A DNA stretch of 64,000 bases from Oopsacas minuta (lineage: Eukaryota; Animalia; Porifera): the NCBI GenBank assembly GCA_024704765.1, contig JAKMXF010000343.1, positions 310,001-374,000 on the forward strand, given 5' to 3'. Every line of letters begins with the position of its first letter. The first letter of the stretch is position 1. Positions 10,176 to 27,300 of this stretch are shown one piece after another. A program made the translations under genes and the position numbers. The notes under the pieces are model-generated. The model searched no databases. It saw nothing but the letters and a program-made list of their open reading frames with translations, and had not been told where the DNA came from.

Positions 10176-12060
10176 TAGTTGCATATTTGCTATAACTTGC
10201 AACCATTCTAGGATTCGACTTATATTCTAGGGGGAAAATTGAATATTTTTGGCTTTTTCTCATAAAGAGGGAAAATCATATAATTTGAAATTCAGGTATT
10301 TGGAGAATAATATCATGTAAACAGTTACGATGGGTTGTTAAGTATGAAATTGAATTATACGAATAATTAAACTTTCTATTAAATTTTGAATTATTGTTTA
10401 TTCATACAATTGTTTGCATATACAAAATTTATCTTTGATCATCTTTATAGAGTTCCAACGCATCTCACTCAGTACCTTCAATGGCATAAGTCACTTCTAT
10501 CGATACCTAGTGTATACAATTACTCCTGTACTTTGTTATTTAATTATTGTGTAACTCTTATACAAATCACTTTATTTATTTCGTATGTCTGTATTACTTT
10601 TGTAATCTTCGAAATACAAGTGAGCTTATAGAGCATAAGACTCAAATTCAGAGGACTTAACCGAGGCATTTGGAATCCATCAGTGTAAATGCTGATGGGC
10701 TATATTGATGAGTACAGTAGAAGCTCTATAAGTAGGGAAGTTTGGGACGGCGAATCTTATGATAAGCTCCGATTCCTCATTATTGTACAAATATGGTCCC
10801 AAACCGTAACTCGATAATTACTTCTATATAGTGGACGTAACTCCACTTACATTGAAGTAATTATCGCAGTCCTCTCTGAGCTTCGGTATAACGGGGAGTT
10901 GACTGTATTCTAAATTTGAATTAAGGCGCTCTTAGTCAATTCTAGTAATATATATTAATTGAGAAGTGGTGCTGGGTATAATTTATTGAATCATCTGTAT
11001 GTACATATGCGTAAAGTTATCTAACACAACACATTATCACATATGCATCATGGTCGAATCTTTGGTGTAAAGTTTATATACAATCAGTATCAGGCTTGTC
11101 AGCAAATCATGACCCGGCCCAAGCCTGATCAGTATGTTTATGGTATTAAACTGATGCGAAAATTTTCATTATTTATATTCTTAGTAATTTATTTATTATG
11201 ATTTCAATAAGTATACAATTTTGCTCTAAATTTTACAAACAGCATTACAGTTGACATCCGTTGTTTTATCGAAACCTCAGCTTGTGAGGAAATCCAAATA
11301 CATTCGAGATAGCGGATGGAGTGATAATTTCTGTACTACAAATAATCATATTTTTCGCTTGATTCGATAAAAACAAATGTTCAAACGAATTATTACACGC
11401 GAGAAATCTGTCAATTTGTTCTTATAAACGATATACGTATTTATTGATTTAGATCATTTGGCTGAAAAGAAACCTTTTCTGACACAACGTATTTCCACTG
11501 AAAATATCTAATATTTGCATTTGATATACTTTCTATTATACGTACACATTTCATCATCTGGAAAAGAATCTTATAAACTTTCATTGTGGATAGTATACTC
11601 CTAAGTGGCCGTTATTAAGCAATATCCTATTGAAAAAAATTGGTTAGATATGATATTTTACAGGACAACTCGGTTAAACTTATTTCCTCCAAAAGGGATT
11701 TTCAAATTATCGAATAAGACGTACTAATTATAGTTTCCCGAGGTGTTACGTTTTATCCGAGTTCTAATGTATATCTTCATTTCAGGAGGTATATTCTGGA
11801 AAATCTGCTGGGCGCTACCCGTCCGCATGGACATAAGGCCACCCTACGTGATACAAAATCTGTATTATATTATATAATAAGAATTTTACTTAATTCCTAC
11901 AGTCGATGATGAATCAAAATTACACTCACATTCCTATCAGCTAACTTACAAGAAATTAAACCTCAACTTGAAACTGATACATAAATGGTAATGATACAAT
12001 TACAATATACAGCTCTATAAATAGGTGAATTAAATATATTTTACAACATCAACAACTAGA

Positions 12061-13503
12061 ATGATATCTTCAATTGCTAACCCAACTTTTTATCAACAGA
12101 GCAGACAGCATACATTTACTAGCGTTGTACAATTAAGACCTGAAATAATCCCAACACCAGGCCGTACAACTCCAATCCCGTTCCCATTCCCTACACATGC
12201 GACACCCAGTTTCCCACCTCACCATACAAATATCCCATCATACGATCTTAGAAATGAATCCAATATGAATATTAACCCTTTTCACATGCAGGCATCACAA
12301 TATAATAATCCTTGTATTCCAATGTACCATACTAATTCACCTAATATCTCTCCTGTATGGGACTACCCTCAACATCAAACACCACCGCCAGTCCCTCCAA
12401 GACTCCATAGACCTATTATCAAACCTCCAACAATACAGCAACCGTACCCTCAAAATGGAATGTATCATAATAGTCCTTATTTAGAAACGATGCCTCCGTC
12501 TAGGATTAATATCCCGCCTGTACCCAATCTTTTGACACCTTCAGGTGATTTCGCGGGTTTTCGTGAAACAACGATAATCGGTTCTCCCCCGAGGACTGCA
12601 GAACACAAGTTTGAAGACATTCCATTATGGATGAATGAACAAGTCGTGCATTTGCCTCCTGACGTTCTGACATTTATATGCACACGGATAGACAACATGC
12701 CAGCTACTGGTACTACAAGAAATTGGCGGGATCTAGCCAAGAGAGCTGGTTTTCCCGTTCAAATGTCATATGCCAACCATCATACATCAATGCTATTGGA
12801 AGTCTGGCGACCCAGACTATGCATATTAATAGAGAAACTAATCGAGATGGACTGCAAAGAATTAGTCTCTGAGATTATACAAATGTTAAAATCAATCCCT
12901 CCACCAAACTATCCATATCAGCCAAACTATACAATACAAGCTCGTAATACAGTTGGATCAGATATGAGTACACAGCACTCAAAATTATTAAATAATACTG
13001 TGTGCTCGGCGGCTTTCAGTGAAGTATCCAAATATTCCGTTTTAAGGTCGATTTCCCCCTCTCCATCAACATCCACTTCATATACACGCTCTCCTTCTCC
13101 AGAGCTCCCGGAAGTTCAACCTGAAATATATGTTTCGTTTCATAAAAACGATGAAGAATTCGGGAAAGAAATAATACGACAAATCGAGTTATTAAACATT
13201 CCCGTTACTTCTAATCTAGCACTCGTACCAGGTACAAATGAACTCACAGAGATTACAGACAACATAGATAACTGTAAAAAGGTTATTGGTGTAATTTCAC
13301 CTGACTATCTTAGAGATGAAATGCCATTATATGAAGGTATGATTGGAATTAAGAAATCAATTACAGGGAAAAAAAGAACTTTTATTCCATTCCAAGTAAA
13401 ACCGACAGAAAAACTTCCTGGATATTTTTCTTCAATAAAAGCTATTCATTGGTCAGATGAGAGGAAATGGATAGCTTTGAAAATGTCACTCACAAAGAAA
13501 TAA
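12061..13503 (+). CDS. MYD88: MyD88-like adaptor: Pro-rich N-terminus, death domain, Ser-rich linker, C-terminal TIR domain; single coding exon
   Basis: Death-domain-like RNWRDLAKRAGF...LLEVW...LIEKLIEMDC; TIR-like IYVSFHKNDEEFGKEIIRQIE, LVPG, CKKVIGVISPDYL, FIPF. Orthology not tested. Confidence 0.7.
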   Translation: MISSIANPTFYQQSRQHTFTSVVQLRPEIIPTPGRTTPIPFPFPTHATPSFPPHHTNIPSYDLRNESNMNINPFHMQASQYNNPCIPMYHTNSPNISPVWDYPQHQTPPPVPPRLHRPIIKPPTIQQPYPQNGMYHNSPYLETMPPSRINIPPVPNLLTPSGDFAGFRETTIIGSPPRTAEHKFEDIPLWMNEQVVHLPPDVLTFICTRIDNMPATGTTRNWRDLAKRAGFPVQMSYANHHTSMLLEVWRPRLCILIEKLIEMDCKELVSEIIQMLKSIPPPNYPYQPNYTIQARNTVGSDMSTQHSKLLNNTVCSAAFSEVSKYSVLRSISPSPSTSTSYTRSPSPELPEVQPEIYVSFHKNDEEFGKEIIRQIELLNIPVTSNLALVPGTNELTEITDNIDNCKKVIGVISPDYLRDEMPLYEGMIGIKKSITGKKRTFIPFQVKPTEKLPGYFSSIKAIHWSDERKWIALKMSLTKK

Positions 13504-14868: not shown

Positions 14869-17800
14869 TTACGAATTATTTGAAACGAGCAGACATGGAT
14901 TAATTGGACGTAGCTTGGGCAAGTCCCGGAAATCTAATTCTATTTGATCTGAAGGTCCGAAGCCGTTTGCTCTCAATTTTTTTATCGGTCTTAACTGTGG
15001 CATATCTCTATGCGGGCTGAACAGAGACCTCAACGGTGGCGGATCATCGTAATACTTTCTGTATAAATCAGCACATCTATTCTTCAAACCAATTTTAGCT
15101 TCGAAGAACTTTTCACGATCTTTAAGATTGAGCGGTGTTAACTTTGGAAGTTCAGAGATATTTACGAAATCATCTGAAAGCTTTCCATTCAAGAATTTAG
15201 TATCTTTTGAGAGTATTTGAGTTGGAATTCGAATCATAAGACACTCGTCATCTTCTTGTTTTTGTTTCTGTCCTGTACTAGGATCCCATACGACCGGTAC
15301 GTTCATATTTTGCGTCGGTTTTTGTTTGACAGGTGCAGTCTCTGTTTGACATTCAGAAGAGGTTGTAGTAGTTATAGCTGATTCGGTTTGTATTTCTAAA
15401 ATCGTGTCTAATTCCGGTTTTGAATTGTCCCATGTATCATCTCCGTCTGTTTGCATTACCCGGTCGACCATAATCGGTTTAAGGGGTTTGGGGACGATTT
15501 TTTGTGGCTGCGGGGGTGGAGAGGTGGAACAGCTGGTGGTCTGCTTCGTAATGGAAGGCTGAGGAGGGGGGCTAGTCGCTGTGCTCATTGTAGCTACCAC
15601 TGGTGATTGTGTCGGTTCAGAAAAATTGAAACTATTCTGTCTGTGTAATGACCCGTTTAATTGAGGTTGCGGAGCTGTTTCTAAGTCTGGAATCATACGT
15701 ACGGTTGCATTAAGATTTGCGATGTTGGTATCAAGGGGTGTACCTTGTAGGTTAGGAGTACTAAATTCAGAAAATGTCCGCGATAGAGAGTTTTTGTTAT
15801 CATTTTCTAAGAGGAGATTGTTGGGAGGAGCCTAGAAATATATTAATCATATTAAAGGCAATTATTCATTCGCCTCAGCAAAATTCCATTAACATAACAT
15901 CTTTCTATTCTGTAAGATGTAATGCTCGAATACTTCTTTCATTTTACAAAAATAGATTTGATTGAAAACATGTCTGAATACAATTACTAGTATTTCCCGA
16001 ATTCCCAAATTCTATATTGTGGCAATTTTCAAATAATAGGTCATTGAAGTAAATCACTTATAAGAACTAATTCTAATATCTCATCGATATCACCCAAACA
16101 GGTCCGCATTAAAGGGTGTGCTATGGGTGCTGCACCACCAGGCCCCCAGACGACTCTTAATGCGGCCAAGCTACCAAACTCTCTGGGATATGAACAATTT
16201 ACTATAATTTGGATACACTTACCAATTGTTGAGTAGGAATTCCATTGAAACGTATAGAATCTCCGTTAACATAGGTTGGTGCTAGTGGTCTATTCATGTG
16301 TGTGGGTAGAGTAGATTGTAGCGGGTAGGCCATCTCCTGGGGATTCTTGGACTCGTGTCTAGGTGTAGATATACGTGCATACCCTGGTGTATTATTCGTA
16401 TTAGGATAATACTGCCCATTGTTAGCTGTATGGTGCATACTTACTGGCATAGAATCTATTGGAAAACGTGATGTCATATCGGTTGCTAGGGTGGAATGCT
16501 CAGTAATGTATAAAGGACTAGAATCGTTATTATTAGACTGGGTATACGGGATCTGCTCTATTGGAGGTCGTATTAGCATTTGTGGATGTTTCTGTGATAA
16601 ATTACAATTCATATTTAATGTATTTATCGGGGGGGTGTTGGGATATGTTTGTTGTTTATTTTGATAGTAGTATGGTATGTTCATAGGATAACGTTGTTTT
16701 TGGTAAACACCTGTGTTTGAATCTATACTATCTTTCCTAGCACTACCTGGCAACATTCCAATCTCACCACTCTGTAACTCAGCTAGAGGAGGTTTGATAC
16801 AACTGGATCTTCTAGTGTCTGGAGTCCTGTAGGGAGCAGCTATAGCCTCATGTAGGGTACTAGGAATTTGTGAGGGGGTGGACCCTTGTATTTGTAACGG
16901 ATCCATTACTGTATTGTGTAGAGGCGTTCTAGAAGGTGAAGAATAGTGGGCTATATTTTCATGGTTAAATTGAGGTTGTTGAGGTAATGTTTGAAATGTA
17001 TAACCTCTGTTATCAAGAGGTGTTGATATATTCTGTTGCTGTTCTGTGTTCTGGAAATGATTTCCGTATGATGATTCGTTTGAGCTAGACCCAACAGGTA
17101 TAATTGTTGGTGTACTTTTGTTTGAACTACCAGGACGGTTTGATAGAGGATTTTGGTATGGAGATTCTCTATCAAATCTCGGAGTTATGTTAGGGACCGG
17201 CAAGGGGGGCGGTCTGGCCTGTAGTTGTAAGTCTAAGAGAGGAGAAATGGATGGACTATCTGACATAGGATAGGTATTCAATCCCTTGAGGATATTATCA
17301 AACTGTGGGGAAGTTGGGCGGGTGGAGAAATCATCACGAGAGTGTGTGTCGTCATCTTCATCAGGAGTACGGGGAGGCCGGGGAGCAGGGGGAGGCTTAT
17401 CGAAACTGTCAAATATTGTGTTATCATCACTTAATTCCTAAATGAATTACAGTGAACTTTGTTAAGTCAATTCAGGGGCACTGGAACAATTCGTCACTAG
17501 TATTTCACTGTTTTACATGGTTTTGTTTCTGGCCAATAGTGACCCGATTCCCTGACAACAGTAGGGAAATTTTGGAATTTTTATACCTGAAAAGTGTTAA
17601 ACTATCAAAATTCTCAGGGAATTGGGTAAACGCAGTGCCAAAATTTCGGTTAATAATTGGCACTACAGTCAATGCTGGTTATAAGGTTCCTATATCCGGT
17701 AAAAATTCAATGGAGTAAGATACAAAAGATTCGGTATATCGAGCTATGGTTCTTATAACCGGTGTTCTTATATCCGGAATCTACTGTATTAAACGAAGTT

Positions 17801-18159
17801 TACATACTACAAATAGCTTAATTCTAAATTCTAGGTAAAAATTTTTGTGGTAAATGGAGCAGGGAGACATAACAACGAATTTCATTTGATTTTGATATAT
17901 ACTTTTGCTAAAAATGGTCATATTTAGAACTGAAAGTTACAATCTAGATATCATGACAACCGGTATGTGTAATAGTTATGTAACATTTAAATAATAAGCA
18001 CAATTATTAATTTAATGCAAATCATATGGAAATGATTATCTTACTGGGTTCATATTATTTGACCACTACTGTATTTTAAACTTTCGAAGACGTATCGCTT
18101 CTCCAAGTATTCGCAGTATGTACCATCAACAAACCTTATCAGAAATACCATTTATTAAG

Positions 18160-18201
<42 letters not shown>

Positions 18202-21200
18202 GAAAGCTCTAAATGTTTAAGAGCTAATCCAGCTCCAGGAGTTTTCGGAACAATATTCATGTCATCCTGAACATCTGATAGATCTGAATCTCTTCCTGGA
18301 GTAACGTTCATTTGTGGTTTACCTCTAAATGGACGTTGTACTGATATATCCATCTCTGATTCATCATCTGATAGGTTAAATTTCATTCCAGGAGGCGGCC
18401 CGGGGGTCTTAGGGATCATTTGTTGTGGACTCATGAGGTCGTCTTGTTGGTCACTAGATGCGTCAGAATTATCATCCATTGGCTCTTCTATAGGGGGAGA
18501 TTCTATCGGGACAGGTTTATGGAGTGCAGGGGATTGAGCATGTGACACTTGTCCTGAGGACTCACTGTCCTCATCGGAAGAGGAGGTACTCTCACTGGAT
18601 GAAGTGTCTGGTGGGTGGAGAGCTTTATCTGCTATCTGTATGGTTAAATATTTCAATATACAAATAATAAAATGCCCAGCCGACAGACTGGTAGTATAGT
18701 TCGGCCTCTGGGTCGTGTTTTATGGACCGAGGGACGTCACACATCGTCCACACACTATTAGGGCATCTCCCTACAGGAGCTGCATTAAAAATTTTTTATT
18801 TAAATAGGCATTTAGTGCCTCAAATAAATATTGTCACTGATATGCTATACTGTCAGCACAGTATTCTAACTTAAATTCATAAATTTAGAATTCTATCAAA
18901 TACCTTCTTTCCCGAAATATTAGGAACATTCCCAGTCTGTGGAGATTTGTTTCTATTTTCTAAGTTCTGTCTTCGCTCATTAGATAGTTTAAGATGAGCT
19001 AGAGGGGGCTGATACTTCTGATGGAACTCTACAATAGTCTTCACTTCTCCTCGCCTAACTGCAGCAGCTGCCTTGTTAGCTAGCTCTGTAGTGAATACAT
19101 AGGCTACTCGTGGATGATCCTGTCCACTACGGGGAGGCTTTGTAACTATTAGAGATTATTTTGTATATGGAGAGACATAATTCTGATAGAAATTAGTGAT
19201 ACATTTAGTAATACATAAAGCGGAACATCAGAGTTATGGTCACCTTTGGGGCAGAAATGTATGGCCATAATTCTGGAATAAATTAATGTTAATGTATGTA
19301 GGAACTGGAATTAAAACGTGGCCGTTAAGCAGGGTGTTCCACTGTGATTACAGTAGATTATAGTGTATTCTGTATAGTAACAGTATAACTCGGATAAGAT
19401 GTACCCATTCGGGAAGCAAAATTCGCACGTAATACCCGAGTGTCAATTATAGTTAGAAAGAATAGTACGTCGTATTCGAGTACTATCGAATCATAATGGA
19501 AATACGTCAGTTTTGTATTAAATTGTTCCATACACAAAACATAAACAAAAATTGAAATCATTTCCAAGAATGAATTAGCGGAAATTACGAAAGGGCGAAG
19601 TACAACGCGAAAAAGTAGGAAATTATGAATTCAGTTCGCTTAATAATACAGCAAAATATGCTTAAACGGAAAGTATCCAAAATCATTATCCGGAAAATAA
19701 CAATCTGTCATTCAGATGTGCAAAAGTTCATATATCTAACCGGAAATCTTTCAAACTTGCAAAAATAGTTTCAATCTTAGACAATTATAATATTTCAAAA
19801 TGCGTAATTTTCTAATAAAATAACAATTCTATCATAAATATAATTATTACTTTCAAGGTAGAAATATTCTAAGAAACGAATAACCAATTTCCTATAACGA
19901 TTAGGTAATATTTCTGTATATGATATGTAGAATGATTATCAATGATATCATAAAACTATGCTAATTGGTATATTAAATATAAATAGGATACATAACATAG
20001 TGATAGATTGGTAACATAGTGTGAATTGTTACAATTAGTGAAGATTTCTAATAATTTTGTAGAGAGAATAAGCATTTTTCCAAAATTTTGTAAATAAAAG
20101 TTATTAACTTAAAGTAGCTAATTGTAGATTGACAGAATAGCAGTTCAGGTCTGGCTCTATTTCACGCGATTACCTTCAATAAGTGTGTGAAAATAGGAAT
20201 TATCGAAAATACCCGAAATTAGCCTGCTGAAAATGTTTAAAGCTACCTGTGAATTTTCCAAAAACTTTATCCAAAAAATATAAGTTTTCACCGCCAAACG
20301 GTTATCAACTACTCCCATGCCAATAAACCATCTCCCGATAAAATCAGATATATCGAACTCCGCATACAGCGGAACCTCGTTAATACGAACTCCAGCTAAA
20401 GCGGCCAATTTTGACCGTCCGTTGCTGTTTCTATTAACGAGATTCCACTGTACATCGAAGTATTTATCGCGGTCCATTTAGCTTCGATATAACTGGAGTT
20501 GATTGTATATTACTAATACATACCTGAACTAGCTTGAGAATTGATATTCTGTGATAGAGATGTAGAATCTGATATCTTAGTAGGAGAATCATCAGATTCA
20601 TCAGAGCTAGTAGATGAATCACTATCAGTACTATCAGTACTACTCTCTTCACTAGATTCTACTGCTGGTAATACAGGCTTAGTAGTGAGAGATGATTGTT
20701 TAGGTAGCTAGAGAGATAAACAATGAATAAACTTGGGCAGTTTCGGGAATTAGGTTTCAATCGATTCAGGGGAGGCCGGGGCCAGGATTTTCAAACTCGG
20801 GGCAAAAGGCAGTGGTGGTTCGAGGTCTAGCAGACCGGGGCAGGACGAGGCACAAAAGCTTTAACCCGGGGGTCAATCCTTTGTTCTTCTCTTTCCTCGC
20901 CTACACCCTCTAAATAAATGAGAGTGAATTTACCAAGAACTGTACCTTTTGTGATTCATTTGACTTTGGTCTAGACACCTGTTTCTGTCCTACAACATTA
21001 AACTTCCCTGCAGTAACAGATACTATCTTCTTACCAGAGAATGTAGCAGTTCGTGGACTCTTCGTTGGATAATCATGTGATTCAAATTGTTCAGGGTCGT
21101 TAGTTTTTTGTGTTTGTTTGTGAGGTGAGTTGTTGTTGTTTAGTTGTGGTCTCTGGAGTGAATGTTTCTTTGGCATATATTTACCACGAGAAGGAGCATG

Positions 21201-23929
21201 ACCAATTGGTATCGTGTCTGTTGTCTATAAAATGCAATATTAATAGTCGATAACTTGTACAGAATATACCATAGATTAATAGAATGATCCAGGTAATTAA
21301 AATATTACCTTTCTATATTCAGAAGTATTGCTCTTAATCTTTGAGGATTTATTGCTATCATTTTTGTTACCCACATCCATATCCCTCCATAGGTTAGGAG
21401 CAGAACTATTATGTCCTGGGGTCTTTGGAACTTCTGGATTATCAGATTCAGAAGATTTTGAGGACCGGAAATGTATAATTTTTGAAGGAGGAGGTTTTGA
21501 ACTAGAACTTTCTGAATCTTCGTTTTCAGAAGATGAACTTAACATAATTCTTATTTTCCTCGTAGGAGATTGCTTCATTTTAGAATTGTGTGAAATATAT
21601 TGAGAATTAGAGGGTTTCAGTACAGTTATCGGTTTTGATTTATCGTCTTTACGTTTCAAATCTAACCTGAAAAGCAATTGACTAATTCTATTCTCTGTAA
21701 AGTAATTATATTATGCTTATTTTAAGAATTCTTTATTTAAAATATGCAGGAATTATAAAATTTCTATTGTCAAGTTTGATTGTTTTTCCAAATAGAATGC
21801 ATTAATTAATGGAGCTTAATTATGTATACTGAGATTATTGCAATCGTAATGCAATTGCCAAAACGATTTTCAAGTTAGTTAGAGTGGTCATTAGTTATTT
21901 AAGTAAACACAATCAACTCCTGTCATATCGAAACTCATAGGATCGCGATAATTACTCCGATATAGCCTTTCATGTTACTTTGACGGTTTAGGATCTTATT
22001 TGTACAATTTCAAACTTCGATATAAGCTGGTATTCTGATACATCTGTGTTGGATATACGGGAGTTGACTGGTCCTATTTCGGTCAGTACGTCTTATTCGG
22101 GTTGTACTATAGTGATAATTATCCTACAACCTACCTTTTAATCTCATCACCATGCTTAGCAATATCCTCCTTTAACATACTATCAGAAGTCTCTTGTACT
22201 TCATATATGACTTTCTTATCAGTACTACTCTTCTGTTTCTTGAATTCATCAACAGTTACTCTAATTGGATTAGATAATCTCTTTGAATATTCTAATGTTA
22301 TATTAGGTGATCCTAGACTTGATTTGAGTTTGTTTAAGATAGGTAATGTGTTCTTCTTAGGTCGGCCACGGTTCGCTTGTACCAATAACGGTTTGTTGGC
22401 TAATTTCTTCTTCGTTTTGTCTGTGGGTCCAGGAGGTCTACCTCGCTTTTTACGTTGTGTAGGCGTGACATCATTAGGTATGTTAGATGGGTCAATGAGT
22501 TTAATATCGGCGGGAGAGTGAGTTGATTCGATTGAGTTGGGTTTTGAAGGTTTGTGTGGTGAATTTGAGAAGTCAGGTGATTGTTTGTGATCTCCTATGG
22601 TTTGTTTGTATAGATAAGGTTTCATATCTTTTGATTTGGGCAATATGCTAGAGTCTTTCTTTATGGAGGAAGCAACCTGGATAAAAATATGAACTGTTAA
22701 AAATTTTTGTTTGAATACATTTTACCAATGACAGAAACCCATGAGGCTATTCTGAGTACCCGACAGGGACCACTGGAAGTTGCTCTAACAAAGTAATTAG
22801 ATATGAAGGCATTGCATGATGTGTTTATCAGAAAACAGTAGTTAACAGTTATGTACAAGAAATACGTATATAGAAATTCGTGCATAAATACTGAGGAAAT
22901 CATATGTAAAGCAAGATATCGACATTTCGTTCCAGATATATATTGAATCAGGTCATTTTGAGGCACTACTCAAGTTGTTGGAGTTGGATTCGATATACCA
23001 TGAATTAGTGGAAATGTCGGAAGTCCAAATCCTGGATACAATTCTCATGAATATTCGGCCTCAAACTTATACTACATGTAAGTTACTAATAAATTGAGTA
23101 ATATTACCCAGTACCTGAATACGTCCATCAAAGCTTTTAGTTAGGCCAGATTCTGTTAATTTCTTATGTTTAGGTTTTTGCTTAGCTTCGAGAGAGGATT
23201 GAAATAATGTAGATGATGATGAATGTATTTTTTGAGATTTCTTGTCGTGATGATGTTTTGAATCAGAAGAACTCCATTCTGACTGTTCTTTGTGTTTCTA
23301 TAAGTTTGTTATGTCAAATATATAATTGAAAGTTCAGAAATTGAGCGGAACCTGGTCACCTCTAAATCACTAATAATAACTCCATTGGGGGTATCAAAAA
23401 GGTTATAATAACAGGAAAACCAGAATACAGTAGACTCCACTTAATAGAGCACATCGGGACTAGGACATTTTGATCCCATTATCCGGGATAAAGGTGTTTT
23501 CTCGCTTAACCCGAGTAAATTAACACTATTTGTATGGTTCAGTTTCTGGACAAGTGGCCCGATTAACCGGAACCTACTTTATATTAAAATAATAATATGA
23601 GTAATTGAGAACCGCACTTAAATCCATAGTATATTACACACAAGTATATTGATAAATATTTCATTACATTCAAACAACATCTTTGGTATATCTCATCTCT
23701 CATACGAAAACTATTAGTTGCAAATATTTACAAGTTAGCATATTTGACGAATTTATAATTAATAACCACTAATTTTGCGTTTTGCGTTTTCAAAGTTATT
23801 TCTATTTTAACACAGAATATAACAGAGTTATCTGAGATTACCACACACAAATTACCAGCTGTAGTATCCACAGCTGGGCTAGTGCAATGTCGCCCAGGCG
23901 GAGAAGTAAATAATAAGCTGACTGGTATA
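14869..23929 (-). CDS. Large low-complexity nuclear protein with AT-hooks and BCL9/Legless HD1 motif. Exons 23929-23856, 23297-23115, 22676-22135, 21687-21309, 21224-20946, 20707-20524, 19145-18904, 18635-18135, 17437-16223, 15831-14869 (about 1500 aa)
   Basis: All junctions are GT-AG and phase-compatible. Contains KKRGRPPG and RGRPKK AT-hooks, Ser/Asp tracts, three PKTPG motifs, Pro/Gln/Asn-rich region, and AYVFTTELANKAAAAVRRGEVKTIVEFH in exon 19145-18904. Confidence 0.75.
18162..18200 (-). repeat. Coding (GAT)n repeat giving a poly-Asp tract
   Basis: (CAT)n on + strand; SDDDDDDDDDDDDDLIN in exon 18635-18135. Confidence 0.9.
20367..20450. mobile_element. 84-bp TA-flanked MITE of a related family
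   Basis: TA-CAGCGGAACCTCGTTAATA ... TATTAACGAGATTCCACTG-TA; related ends near 27601 and 54817. Confidence 0.7.
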
Positions 23930-25399: not shown

Positions 25400-27300
25400 T
25401 TCCCACACAAATTGCATATGAACAAACAAGATATGGATTCATGTCCGGAATTGTACACTGCAATTTTATAACTACCAAAAATGGTAAAAATGATATTAAT
25501 GCTGGAGGAATTTATCAGAAGTGTTTTTACACAAAATTGTTGGAATATATTTTCTTTTGAAAATTTTGCGAAGAATCTATTAAAAGAATTTTACAATTCT
25601 TGTAACCTTAATCAATAATACTAGTTATTGACAAGATGAGAATCTACAAATATACTTATAGTGTTGTTGCTAGGACGAAAAGTTTGTTTAGCAATTAAGA
25701 GAGTAAAGGACGTTTCTGTTTTGGAGTTGTTCTCCATTAACCTCTTCCATATCTATAAATTATTTATCCGTGGTTGACAGTGGAATTTCATTGTTATTCT
25801 CTTAGTATTTCATAATTACGTATCAATAATGACAATAGACTATTCACATGTGTGTAAAGACGTTCGTTTCAGCTCCAAATCTGTGGGAGCGCCAGAGGGT
25901 TCGTGGCGCCTTTCGAGTATATTTCTCGAAATGCTCAACCTCCATAAAAGTTTGGTAGCGAGAACATAAAATCTTCAGAACTGTTCATCACAAATATATT
26001 TCGAGGAATATAATATGATTTATGGTCAGAAAATGTATAGAACATCAAGCCAAATCTGCTATTCAAATATATTAATTAATATTAGCAGTAAAACTGCGTT
26101 AAATAACGCGGAATTCGTTAGGTAATAAACATTCAAAGATGTGTAACAAACTATACGTATTGTAAATGCTTGCCTTATTCTTGGAGAAAAGTTGTATTTG
26201 AGGTAGAATACTCTCTTGTAGCTTAGAAATCAGATCTTGATTCTTAGAAGAATGACTCAAACTCCTAGCAATATACAAATATTAAAATGTGTGCATTTAT
26301 GTGTGCATTAACAATAAAATAATCAATATTTAAAATTAGAATTGAATAATAGAAAATACAAGAATACAGTCTTACATATTTGAGAGAGGAATTCCACAAA
26401 AAAATAATATCTCACAATATTCGCATTCACCAGACAAACGATTTTAGAGGTGATTTAACATTTATGCAAGTCGTACAAACACTAGATAATAAATTTGAAG
26501 TAGAGGTTTGCTGCTGCAGTGAGGCCTAACGCTAACGACACTTCGAATTGAATAAAGAACTCTGATATTCACATGGCTTTAGAACTGACTCGTGCTATCT
26601 AACTAGATATTTCCATTAGTTACGAATGGCCTCTTTCTACCACTGTGGTTATAATTATATGAACAGACTGATAATAATGTATTTTAGAATACTCAAACGG
26701 ATTCTTTAAAATTACAGTCTTGTACTGACTTCACGGTTAACTGGAGCATAACTTCCAATTTTTAAGCGGTCGGTAATGAAGCCTTAATCTAATTGAAAGA
26801 TAAATATTTGTTACAGCTTTAATGAGATGTAACAAATATTTATCTATCGATTAGATAGAGTAAAGAATTTTAGGTAAATTGGCAGACAGAAAATAGACAC
26901 TGAAACCTTTTTATGACGCCTATGAACTCTCACCCCATCACTCTAAAAGTGTGCTTAAAACACCTTCGATTTCAAGGGTAAGATTCATAACTAATCCGAA
27001 TATTTGAACATGTCAAAACTCGAGAAATGACAAATATCCAGTGAGGAAATCTGACAGATGTCAACTTCAAGAGTCTGATAAATACAGTGTGCCTGAAACT
27101 ATGGGGGATAGAGAATGTCTCTGGCCGTAAACAAAAGTTAAATAACCAAAATTCAAACTCACTTGATAAGTTTTGAGCATTCTTTGCTTCCGCTAGAAAC
27201 CTGAACTCTAGAAAAATTTCTGTTATCAAATGTAGCCATACAATATGAATAACTGAAAATTGAATTTTATTATTCAAATTTTACGCAAAATCATATTAAG
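25400..27300 (-). mobile_element. Possible highly degraded hAT (Buster/Charlie-like) transposase remnant
   Basis: Stop-interrupted fragments ISS*IARVSSKAM*I, FFIQFEVS and EILFFVEFL loosely resemble the LSNxTxxRRIxDM, FSLQLDES and EEFLFC motifs in order; weak. Confidence 0.3.

Follow-up and report, generated by a model that had tools for sequence, protein, structure and literature searches.

A BCL9/Legless-type HD1 module in a predicted glass-sponge protein with no recognisable beta-catenin-binding site

The 64-kb stretch of Oopsacas minuta DNA analysed here (64,000 nucleotides, below called the window) contains a long gene, one exon of which encodes a true BCL9/Legless-type HD1 motif. From sequence comparison, we put the probability at roughly 0.6 that the predicted product, a glass-sponge protein of ~1,519 amino acids, is a divergent scaffold of the BCL9/Legless family that would have kept Pygo binding and in which beta-catenin coupling would be absent.

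The gene and its HD1 exon

The gene occupies positions 26264-14869 of the minus strand and is assembled from 10-11 exons with GT-AG splice sites. Nine GT-AG exons yield a continuous open reading frame of 1,488 amino acids, to which a tentative first coding exon adds ~31. The start codon is probably split between AT at 26377-26376 and G at 26264; the donor concerned (AT followed by GTAAGA) is seen in the related locus L001 as well. The parts of the gene are as follows.

26174..26264 (-): tentative first coding exon, (M)SLSHSSKNQDLISKLQESILPQIQLFSKNK, with a GC donor; conserved coding block, collinear in L001 and L005
23115..23297 (-): exon "up", basic/Ser-rich N-terminal region; splice sites kept in L001, continuous open frame
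22135..22676 (-): exon A, two AT-hooks, GRP cores conserved in relatives
22454-22425 (-): AT-hook 1, RKKRGRPPGP, in exon A
22373-22353 (-): AT-hook 2, NRGRPKK, in exon A
21309..21666 (-): exon B, acidic/Ser tract SSSSENEDSESSSS and the first VPKTPG (21431-21414)
20946..21224 (-): exon C, conserved block APSRGKYMPKK
20524..20707 (-): exon D, acidic/Ser tract, phase 1 at its end
18904..19145 (-): exon E, the HD1 exon, 242 nt, phase 1 in and phase 0 out
19021..19110 (-): HD1 core RVAYVFTTELANKAAAAVRRGEVKTIVEFH, predicted Pygo-PHD-binding strand and helix
18940..19020 (-): extension 3' of HD1, QKYQPPLAHLKLSNERRQNLENRNKSP, conserved in five sponge genomes
18135..18635 (-): exon F, acidic/Ser tracts, two PKTPG sites and a run of 14 Asp
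18416-18399, 18251-18234 and 18200-18159 (-): IPKTPG, VPKTPG and the 14 Asp of exon F
16223..17437 (-): exon G, 405 aa, P/S/N/Q-rich, short conserved blocks
14869..15831 (-): exon H with the stop codon, contains MQTDGDDTWDNS and PPPLR
15153-15127, 15006-14980 and 14925-14899 (-): three invariant PxLxP motifs of exon H
about 15126-15046 (-): helix DREKFF...KYY of exon H, predicted by AF2

Exon E is flanked by AG and GT, which match its limits, and has a single open frame, beginning at 19143, with the translation TKPPRSGQDHPRVAYVFTTELANKAAAAVRRGEVKTIVEFHQKYQPPLAHLKLSNERRQNLENRNKSPQTGNVPNISGKK. The sequence-only reading from which this work started had proposed that this exon splices in frame at both ends and belongs to a protein of at least 1500 amino acids with acidic tracts, PKTPG repeats and a pair of AT-hooks; the open frame is indeed continuous across the gene, and the spliced translation contains all of these elements, PKTPG occurring at three sites. 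Two details needed correction. The motif had been placed at 19101-19021, and its end is right, but AYVF...FH begins at 19104; the exon had also been described as missing from the track of open reading frames, which does not hold for its second half, spanned by a GTG-started frame at 18877-19044. The motif is present in one copy in the window (tblastn E = 8e-11; the second-best match has an E of 2.4).

Coding function of exon E was assessed by comparing the window with loci of four related genomes. The acceptor, donor and phases of the exon are identical in loci L001, L004, L005 and L006. Its pN, 0.12, is the lowest among the exons of the gene, and in the HD1 core pN falls to 0.058, compared with 0.21 for the whole gene; pS is ~0.75, so that synonymous sites are saturated. 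In L004, HD1 is 69% identical, and the gene as a whole ~45%. Sequencing reads from the organism itself (X1-X4) and from a relative diverged by ~4% (X5), all of them DNA, showed no splice joints, only repeat-derived ones within introns. Judged by comparative genomics, exon E is a real and probably constitutive coding exon.

Extra copies of exon E associated with transposable elements do exist in a related species (L003, P0019 and P0020), as might be expected if the exon were a pseudo-exon or non-functional remnant, that is, a chance or decaying open frame outside the translated mRNA. The splice sites and phases kept in five genomes argue against this, as do purifying selection that is the strongest in the gene, with synonymous sites saturated, and the dependence of the reading frame on exon E, whose skipping would break the frame since it is 242 nt long. 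We regard a remnant as exceedingly improbable. The copy in L003 lies between transposable elements and adjoins genes for reverse transcriptase and a DDE protein; the species that carries it has its true orthologue in L005. Had L003 been a retrocopy free of introns, it would have proved splicing, but this was rejected, similarity 5' of HD1 being too weak. The apparent lack in L004 of the intron after HD1 was likewise discarded: the intron is there, since the alignment, made with composition statistics off, passes through stop codons.

Relation to BCL9/Legless HD1 and the Pygo partner

Searched with phmmer against the PDB, the sponge motif matched HD1 chains of BCL9, B9L and Legless (E = 9e-8 to 4e-3), and 20 of 30 residues are identical to human BCL9 HD1 (E = 9e-8). 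The alignment of the sponge and human motifs scores 106, compared with 24.6 +/- 3.4 for shuffles. Divergence since the common ancestor is estimated at more than 600 Myr. The human HD1 sequence quoted when the exon was noticed agrees with PDB chains 2vp7_B and 2vpb_B, and the identity then claimed, about 19 of 28 positions, was reproduced as 19/28.

HD1 of BCL9/Legless consists of a beta strand (YVF) and a helix that bind the Pygo PHD finger, with T182, A185, N186, A189 and I200 invariant, and the contacts to the PHD finger are made by Y178, V179, F180, T182, A185, N186, A189, I200 and V201 of BCL9 (PMC2726290). All nine contact residues are identical in the sponge HD1, which also retains the residue at each of the eight columns that do not vary in an HD1 alignment of 22 sequences. 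With a significant phmmer match and every known PHD-contact residue intact, the motif of exon E is a true BCL9/Legless-type HD1, as had been suggested.

The predicted structure agrees with this assignment. AF2 modelled the HD1 helix of exon E with a pLDDT of ~90, and the best five Foldseek matches of the model were HD1 chains (rmsd 1.5-4.2 A); B9L HD1, further down the list, superposes at 0.6 A. The model also contains a short helix at exon E residues 55-64, inside the extension that follows HD1. This extension is as conserved as HD1 itself in the five sponge genomes, and its P...L.(L/V)S pattern can be aligned to the HD1 exons found in two further presumed-animal groups.

The conserved block measures ~59 amino acids, twice the canonical HD1 length, which could mean that an HD1-like module was kept for some other partner (another PHD finger or protein), Pygo perhaps having been lost and the resemblance to the Pygo-BCL9 pair being merely historical. 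A word-limited protein search with the human Pygo PHD (query verified against the PDB) returned six fragments, none from sponge assemblies; this is in line with such a reading, but the search is too insensitive to count as absence. On the other side, identity at 9/9 of the crystal-structure contacts to the Pygo PHD is not easily accounted for unless the partner surface has stayed the same, and Pygo orthologues have been reported as far down as sponges (PMC3851687). We consider a change of partner very unlikely.

Beta-catenin-binding elements

In BCL9/Legless proteins, beta-catenin is bound at its Armadillo repeat 1 by HD2 (Pfam PF11502), an amphipathic helix, and ChiLS is bound by HD3, a helix whose invariant Trp is followed by an F/Y doublet (PMC5352222). 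Pfam PF11502 matched none of the exons of the sponge gene, whereas the positive control, a human HD2 peptide, scored 66 bits; exons F, G and H had no match in the PDB. A 23-mer scan of five sponge loci in all frames gave scattered scores of 21-25 that are not collinear across species. As a control we used L007, an HD1 gene on an AT-rich contig of a metagenome scaffold, presumed to be from an animal. The same 23-mer scan recovered from it an HD2-like helix with a score of 38 (z = 6). Since both Pfam and phmmer miss this probable HD2, negative results obtained with them are weak for divergent sequences, and the apparent absence of HD2 rests mainly on the exhaustive scan with its positive control. 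The earlier statement that no clear HD2 follows HD1 was thus upheld by Pfam, the PDB search and the exhaustive scan. The HD3 pattern W...[FY][FY] was found neither in the window protein nor in that of L001; a Trp is present at the C-terminal helix in two orthologues and is not conserved.

A conventional BCL9/Legless orthologue, with the Pygo-beta-catenin link kept and HD2, perhaps also HD3, diverged past recognition, has to be weighed here, given that the probable HD2 of L007 escapes two of the methods. The best HD2 candidate would be the conserved C-terminal helix LTPLNLKDREKFFEAKIGLKNR, the only AF2 helix in exon H, with D, R and G residues that do not vary. In the 23-mer scan of the window it comes third, and it provides the sole hhalign alignment of the HD2 profile (on LTPLNLKDREKFFE), and glass sponges retain beta-catenin and TCF. 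The hhalign match is, however, not significant (probability 0.4%, E = 0.14), Asp replaces His of the HR pair, and its hydrophobic residues either fall out of register or vary among the sponges. The helix, at about residues 1391-1430 of the 1,488-residue frame, lies ~850 residues beyond HD1, compared with an HD1-HD2 gap of ~115 residues in L007, and glass-sponge TCF has been reported without a predicted beta-catenin-binding domain. Taken with these points, a conventional orthologue appears unlikely. A divergent scaffold with no recognisable HD2 or HD3, and therefore probably with no bridging of Pygo to beta-catenin of the BCL9 kind, remains our preferred reading.

Architecture, origin and Wnt context

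Outside HD1 the protein appears mostly disordered, as judged from AF2 models of exons E and H. For exon H the mean pLDDT is 44, and its sole helix spans exon H residues 236-262; with this pLDDT and a disordered model, the idea that the conserved C-terminal region is a folded domain was rejected. Invariant columns of exon H were taken from an eight-sequence alignment. A homology search with this exon retrieved six relatives, all of them from ENA assemblies bearing orthologous loci, and a search of the ESM Atlas gave low-score matches and no lead. Exon G has no match in Pfam or the PDB. Outside HD1, the relatives that were found all came from apparent glass-sponge assemblies. The G-R-P cores of the AT-hooks, with basic Arg/Lys flanks, are conserved in five genomes (the window, L001, L004, L005 and L006); they score 10.9-11 bits in Pfam AT_hook, below the cut-off of 17.4, as is usual for single hooks.

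Human BCL9 and BCL9L/B9L (PDB 2vp7, 2vpb, 2xb1 and 2gl7) share the predicted HD1 fold with the sponge protein, are of similar size (~1,400-1,500 amino acids) and are likewise largely disordered with short conserved motifs. They differ in having HD2 (PF11502) and HD3, neither of which was detected in the sponge protein, and in the position of HD1, at about residue 560 in the sponge and ~180 in BCL9. BCL9 is Pro/Met/Gly-rich, as is the product of L007; the sponge protein is rich in Ser, Pro, Lys and Asp. No AT-hooks, PKTPG sites or PxLxP motifs have been described for BCL9, whereas the sponge protein has two of the first, three of the second and, near its C-terminus, three of the last. The initial view that this is not the BCL9 architecture is only half right; it overlooks a protein that is also ~1,500 amino acids long, largely disordered by prediction and equipped with short conserved motifs.

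Drosophila Legless (PDB 3zpv), like the sponge protein, is a long adaptor, and its HD1 chain was matched by phmmer (E = 2e-3) and by Foldseek (TM 0.78-0.80 to the sponge model, target-normalised). Legless needs HD2 to recruit Armadillo, and the sponge protein has no recognisable counterpart. The BCL9-like gene compared beyond HD1 was that of L007. Its HD1 exon is 52-59% identical to the sponge HD1 over 29 amino acids, the P...L.VS extension being common to both, but it continues with an HD2-like helix, LTPERAKHRKNQLNKIEDLKTKI, ~115 amino acids downstream of HD1, for which the sponge protein shows no recognisable counterpart, an HD3-like stretch that includes a Trp, and tails rich in Pro, Met, Gly and His, and it has no AT-hooks. 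Because nothing aligns with L007 beyond HD1, orthology to BCL9 rests on ~45 residues. AT-hook chromatin proteins such as HMGA have R-G-R-P cores, basic flanks, disorder and acidic tracts in common with the sponge protein. HMGA proteins, which are small, lack HD1; what is shared is a short motif, and no common descent is indicated.

In the mechanism that we envisage, the sponge HD1 would dock on the rear of a PHD finger of the Pygo type. Its YVF strand would pair with beta5 of that finger, its helix would pack on alpha1 through T, A, N, A, I and V, and this contact would buttress the reading of methylated H3K4 by the PHD finger. On the Pygo side, HD1 is bound by T375, A378, L382, A388 and W390 of PHD loop2 in human numbering. 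The two AT-hooks may tether the protein to AT-rich DNA. Short motifs could recruit or regulate partners: the three PxTP sites are of a kinase type, the acidic Ser tracts are CK2-like, and the three PxLxP motifs, together with PPPLR, resemble ligands of MYND domains.

Regarding origin, HD2 may well have been lost rather than primarily absent. Since L007 carries an HD2-like helix, a secondary loss by glass sponges, in which Wnt is missing, is at least as likely as an ancestral state, and the original suggestion of an ancestral module is not favoured over it. In a bolder version of this reading, an HD1-Pygo chromatin-reader module would predate, and be separable from, Wnt/beta-catenin signalling, and the sponge protein would be an AT-hook-tethered BCL9 precursor that never had HD2, the helix having been added later toward other animals; we think this improbable.

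Among animals, glass sponges are the standard textbook example of a lack of Wnt ligands, Wntless and Dishevelled. A survey found them without wnt, wls, dvl and fzdA, with beta-catenin and TCF retained and TCF having no predicted beta-catenin-binding domain (PMC5684314). BCL9 and Pygo are unmentioned in the Oopsacas genome paper, the Aphrocallistes genome paper and the 2017 Wnt survey. A study of the mouse lens (PMC4197948) describes beta-catenin-independent roles of BCL9 and Pygo. A contact-complete HD1 that is the most constrained part of its gene, combined with the lack of a recognisable beta-catenin site in the protein, argues for a Wnt-independent BCL9-Pygo function and suggests that the HD1 module works without Wnt signalling in the glass sponge. 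The candidate partner motifs (AT-hooks and PxLxP) have no known counterpart in bilaterian BCL9, and the sponge protein may serve as a natural experiment, a concrete system in which a Wnt-independent function of BCL9 and Pygo could be probed.

HD1 exon and its match to BCL9/Legless

The minus-strand exon at 19145-18904, with AG on its acceptor side and GT on its donor side, is open in one of three frames, with the translation TKPPRSGQDHPRVAYVFTTELANKAAAAVRRGEVKTIVEFHQKYQPPLAHLKLSNERRQNLENRNKSPQTGNVPNISGKK. It had been described as missing from the ORF track, which needs qualifying since its second half is covered by a GTG-started ORF (18877-19044). When the 80-aa exon peptide was compared with all PDB chains by phmmer, the only matches were HD1 peptides, i.e., the Pygopus (Pygo) PHD-binding motif of BCL9/Legless: human BCL9 (2vp7_B, E = 9e-8; 2vpb, 2vpe), a fusion of B9L with the PYGO2 PHD (2xb1, 4up0) and Drosophila Legless (3zpv, E = 2e-3). 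The phmmer alignment contains 20 identities in 30 positions between human BCL9 and sponge HD1. The human sequence given in the sequence-only reading agrees with the PDB alignment, as does its estimate of about 19 identities in 28 positions (19 of 28 on that stretch); the motif it proposed is present, with its start at 19104, one codon ahead of the proposed 19101. The Smith-Waterman score against human HD1 was 106 (24.6 ± 3.4 for shuffled queries), and the match stood alone when the whole window was searched in all six frames (E = 8e-11; runner-up 2.4).

A profile search added HD1 exons from two further groups, on Logan, ENA and JGI contigs. The resulting alignment of 22 sequences has eight invariant and five near-invariant columns, every one of which is retained in the sponge exon; the alignment continues for about 12 residues beyond canonical HD1, where the pattern is P...L.(L/V)S. 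AlphaFold2, using this alignment, placed a helix at TELANKAAAAVRR (pLDDT ~90). When the model was compared with the PDB by Foldseek, the best five matches were BCL9 and Legless HD1 chains (target-normalised TM-scores 0.74-0.80), with E-values of only ~0.1 because the chains are short; the Foldseek score draws on sequence in addition to shape. The lower-ranked B9L HD1 superimposes on the model with an rmsd of 0.6 Å.

The HD1 residues that touch the Pygo PHD finger are listed by Fiedler et al. 2008 (PMC2726290): Y178, V179 and F180 make beta-sheet contacts, and T182, A185, N186, A189, I200 and V201 make side-chain contacts. The sponge HD1 has the same residue at each of the nine positions (numbering via the PDB alignment), and a change of HD1 partner appears distinctly improbable. 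No mention of BCL9, Legless or Pygo was found in the glass-sponge literature searched; Pygo orthologues are said to extend "all the way to sponges" (PMC3851687).

Gene model and conservation of the exon

Minus-strand stop-free segments were joined at splice sites conserved in the alignment to the orthologous sponge locus L001. In the resulting nine-exon set every intron is GT-AG, and the joined sequence is a single ORF of 1,488 aa.

Coding exons of the gene (all minus strand; splice sites of the nine-exon set conserved in L001)
26264-26174, tentative first coding exon; conserved coding block, collinear in L001 and L005
23297-23115, coding exon
22676-22135, coding exon
21666-21309, coding exon
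21224-20946, coding exon
20707-20524, coding exon
19145-18904, coding exon carrying HD1
18635-18135, coding exon
17437-16223, coding exon
15831-14872, last coding exon (exon H); stop codon 14871-14869

The tentative first exon has a GC donor at 26172-26173 (AAG|GCAAGC). Its start ATG is probably split between AT (26377-26376, ahead of a donor at 26375) and G at 26264; the AT|GTAAGA donor is also found in L001. This exon would tentatively add 31 aa, for a total of ~1,519 aa. Upstream of it, a stretch of ~85 nt (26509-26594) that holds a minimal upstream ORF (ATG-TGA) is ~85-100% identical to L001:1925-2010 in every frame; conservation is therefore at the DNA level, not coding, and the block could belong to the promoter or to the 5'UTR.

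In protein searches, several ENA assemblies gave matches to the HD1 exon and to the final exon, and their contigs yielded four collinear orthologous loci.

Orthologous loci
L001, ERZ25072730, 65% overall protein identity
L005, ERZ25071281
L006, ERZ25072740
L004, ERZ20067936, ~45% identity

The case for the exon being real is built on comparison of splice sites, phase and constraint across genomes. In all five genomes, that of the window included, the AG acceptor lies at the same position in phase 1 and the K|GT donor is in phase 0; given the 242-nt length and the upstream phase 1, skipping would shift 890 conserved downstream codons out of frame. Synonymous sites are saturated between the window and L001 (pS ~0.75). 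The non-synonymous proportion, 0.21 over the gene, falls to 0.12 in the HD1 exon (the lowest among exons) and to 0.058 in the HD1 core. Even the most distant orthologue retains 69% identity over the HD1 block. That the exon is a non-expressed one would, on this comparison, be extremely improbable.

The sequencing runs that cover the gene region are DNA, from the same organism and, in one run (X5), from a relative ~4% diverged; the only joints observed in them derive from intronic repeats. Intronic stretches at 17588-17784, 18573-18790, 20346-20542 and 21922-22118 reach 10-100x the depth of the local contig, with joints running between 20454 and 21972 in opposite strand orientation. These stretches are copies of one short, MITE-like element, highly repeated, that sits in several of the gene's introns. 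In X5, a DNA run of a diverged relative that is likely a sister species or divergent population, the gene (window 16800-22700) is found at ~96% identity with small intronic indels; the gap in its contigs at 18967-19163, at roughly 8-fold depth, carries no evidential weight.

A TIR-domain gene lies directly downstream in conserved synteny (window 12534-13497; L001:15524-16939; L005:11760-13244; L006:11664-12431), followed further downstream in L004, L005 and L006 by a short-chain dehydrogenase gene. In a related sponge assembly the HD1 exon by itself is present in at least three further copies (L003:9881-10228 of ERZ25071281, P0019 and P0020), adjoining reverse-transcriptase-like and DDE-transposase ORFs within a duplicated USP-like gene, an arrangement that resembles capture of the exon by a transposable element; the genuine orthologue in this species lies on a separate contig, L005. 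NCBI lists a sponge-type HD1 fragment, RVAYVFTTELANE...HLRLSAER, from a 278-nt contig (WP_411023847.1, GCA_046554155.1) under 'Salmonella sp. s51228', as a hypothetical protein; the contig is almost certainly eukaryotic and mislabelled.

HD2, HD3 and the rest of the protein

The beta-catenin-binding helix HD2 was searched for with Pfam PF11502, against which the human HD2 peptide (matched to PDB 2gl7 and 3sl9) scored 66 bits as a positive control; no sponge exon matched, even at E ≤ 10. As a control nearer the base of animals we used L007, an AT-rich (30% G+C), presumed animal scaffold found in ENA, JGI and NCBI metagenomes, which carries a BCL9-like gene with HD1 at 10586-10672. About 115 aa downstream of HD1 it has a helix-like stretch, LTPERAKHRKNQLNKIEDLKTKI (~11030-11110), that keeps the H-R pair and spaced hydrophobics of HD2, followed by a Trp-containing, HD3-like stretch. 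Neither PF11502 nor phmmer against the PDB detected this helix, so the sponge negatives carry little weight where they come from these two methods. The helix was found by an exhaustive scan, ungapped and in 23-mers, over every forward frame (score 38, z = 6.0; next best 21); run with the human and L007 queries together, the same scan reached scores of just 21-25 across the five sponge loci, at positions that do not correspond between species. A small HD2 profile aligned by hhalign to the C-terminal helix LTPLNLKDREKFFE gave a probability of 0.4% (E = 0.14). The main rival reading, a conventional BCL9 orthologue whose HD2 has diverged past recognition, seems unlikely. HD3, the ChiLS-binding helix, is recognised by an invariant Trp with an F/Y doublet downstream of it (PMC5352222); no counterpart was found in the sponge protein, and L007 did not align with that protein outside HD1.

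The protein is rich in Ser, Pro, Lys, Asp and Thr; no Pfam domains were found in it, and no PDB relatives outside HD1. Exon H is predicted to be disordered (mean pLDDT 44) with one helix, and its homologues were found only in ENA assemblies that also contain the orthologous gene.

Blocks conserved across the five genomes (window, L001, L004, L005, L006)
two AT-hook cores, RKKRGRPPGP and NRGRPKK
three [IV]PKTPG sites
acidic Ser tracts and a 14-Asp run
MQTDGDDTWDNS
three invariant PxLxP motifs (ELPKLTPLN, DMPQLRPIK, DLPKLRPIN) in the C-terminal 100 residues; also PPPLR

We read the PxTP sites as putative MAP-kinase-type sites and PxLxP/PPPLx as putative MYND-domain ligands.

Place in the BCL9/Legless family

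Because two of the three defining motifs, HD2 and HD3, were not found, we do not count the sponge protein among the canonical BCL9 members; it is a new form that has HD1 in common with the BCL9/Legless family. The sequence-only reading had proposed an ancestral module, which is possible but less favoured and rather improbable: at least one further contig with HD1 (the presumed animal L007) has the canonical HD1-HD2 order, and the Wnt components of glass sponges are thought to have been lost secondarily.

The G+C content of the window (35.1%) agrees with the published 36 ± 2.1% for Oopsacas minuta (PMC10280926). Glass sponges are reported without wnt, wntless, dishevelled and frizzled A; they retain beta-catenin, TCF, Groucho, GSK3, Axin and APC, and a beta-catenin-binding domain was not predicted in their TCF (PMC5684314). 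Placozoa are said to conserve enhanceosome components, and PMC4197948 describes a role of BCL9 and Pygo independent of beta-catenin in the mouse lens.

The most economical reading, to which we give a probability of about 60%, is a scaffold of the BCL9/Legless lineage in which a predicted Pygo-binding module is under strong selection, the coupling to beta-catenin and ChiLS is absent, most likely lost, and DNA-tethering and partner motifs are lineage-specific.
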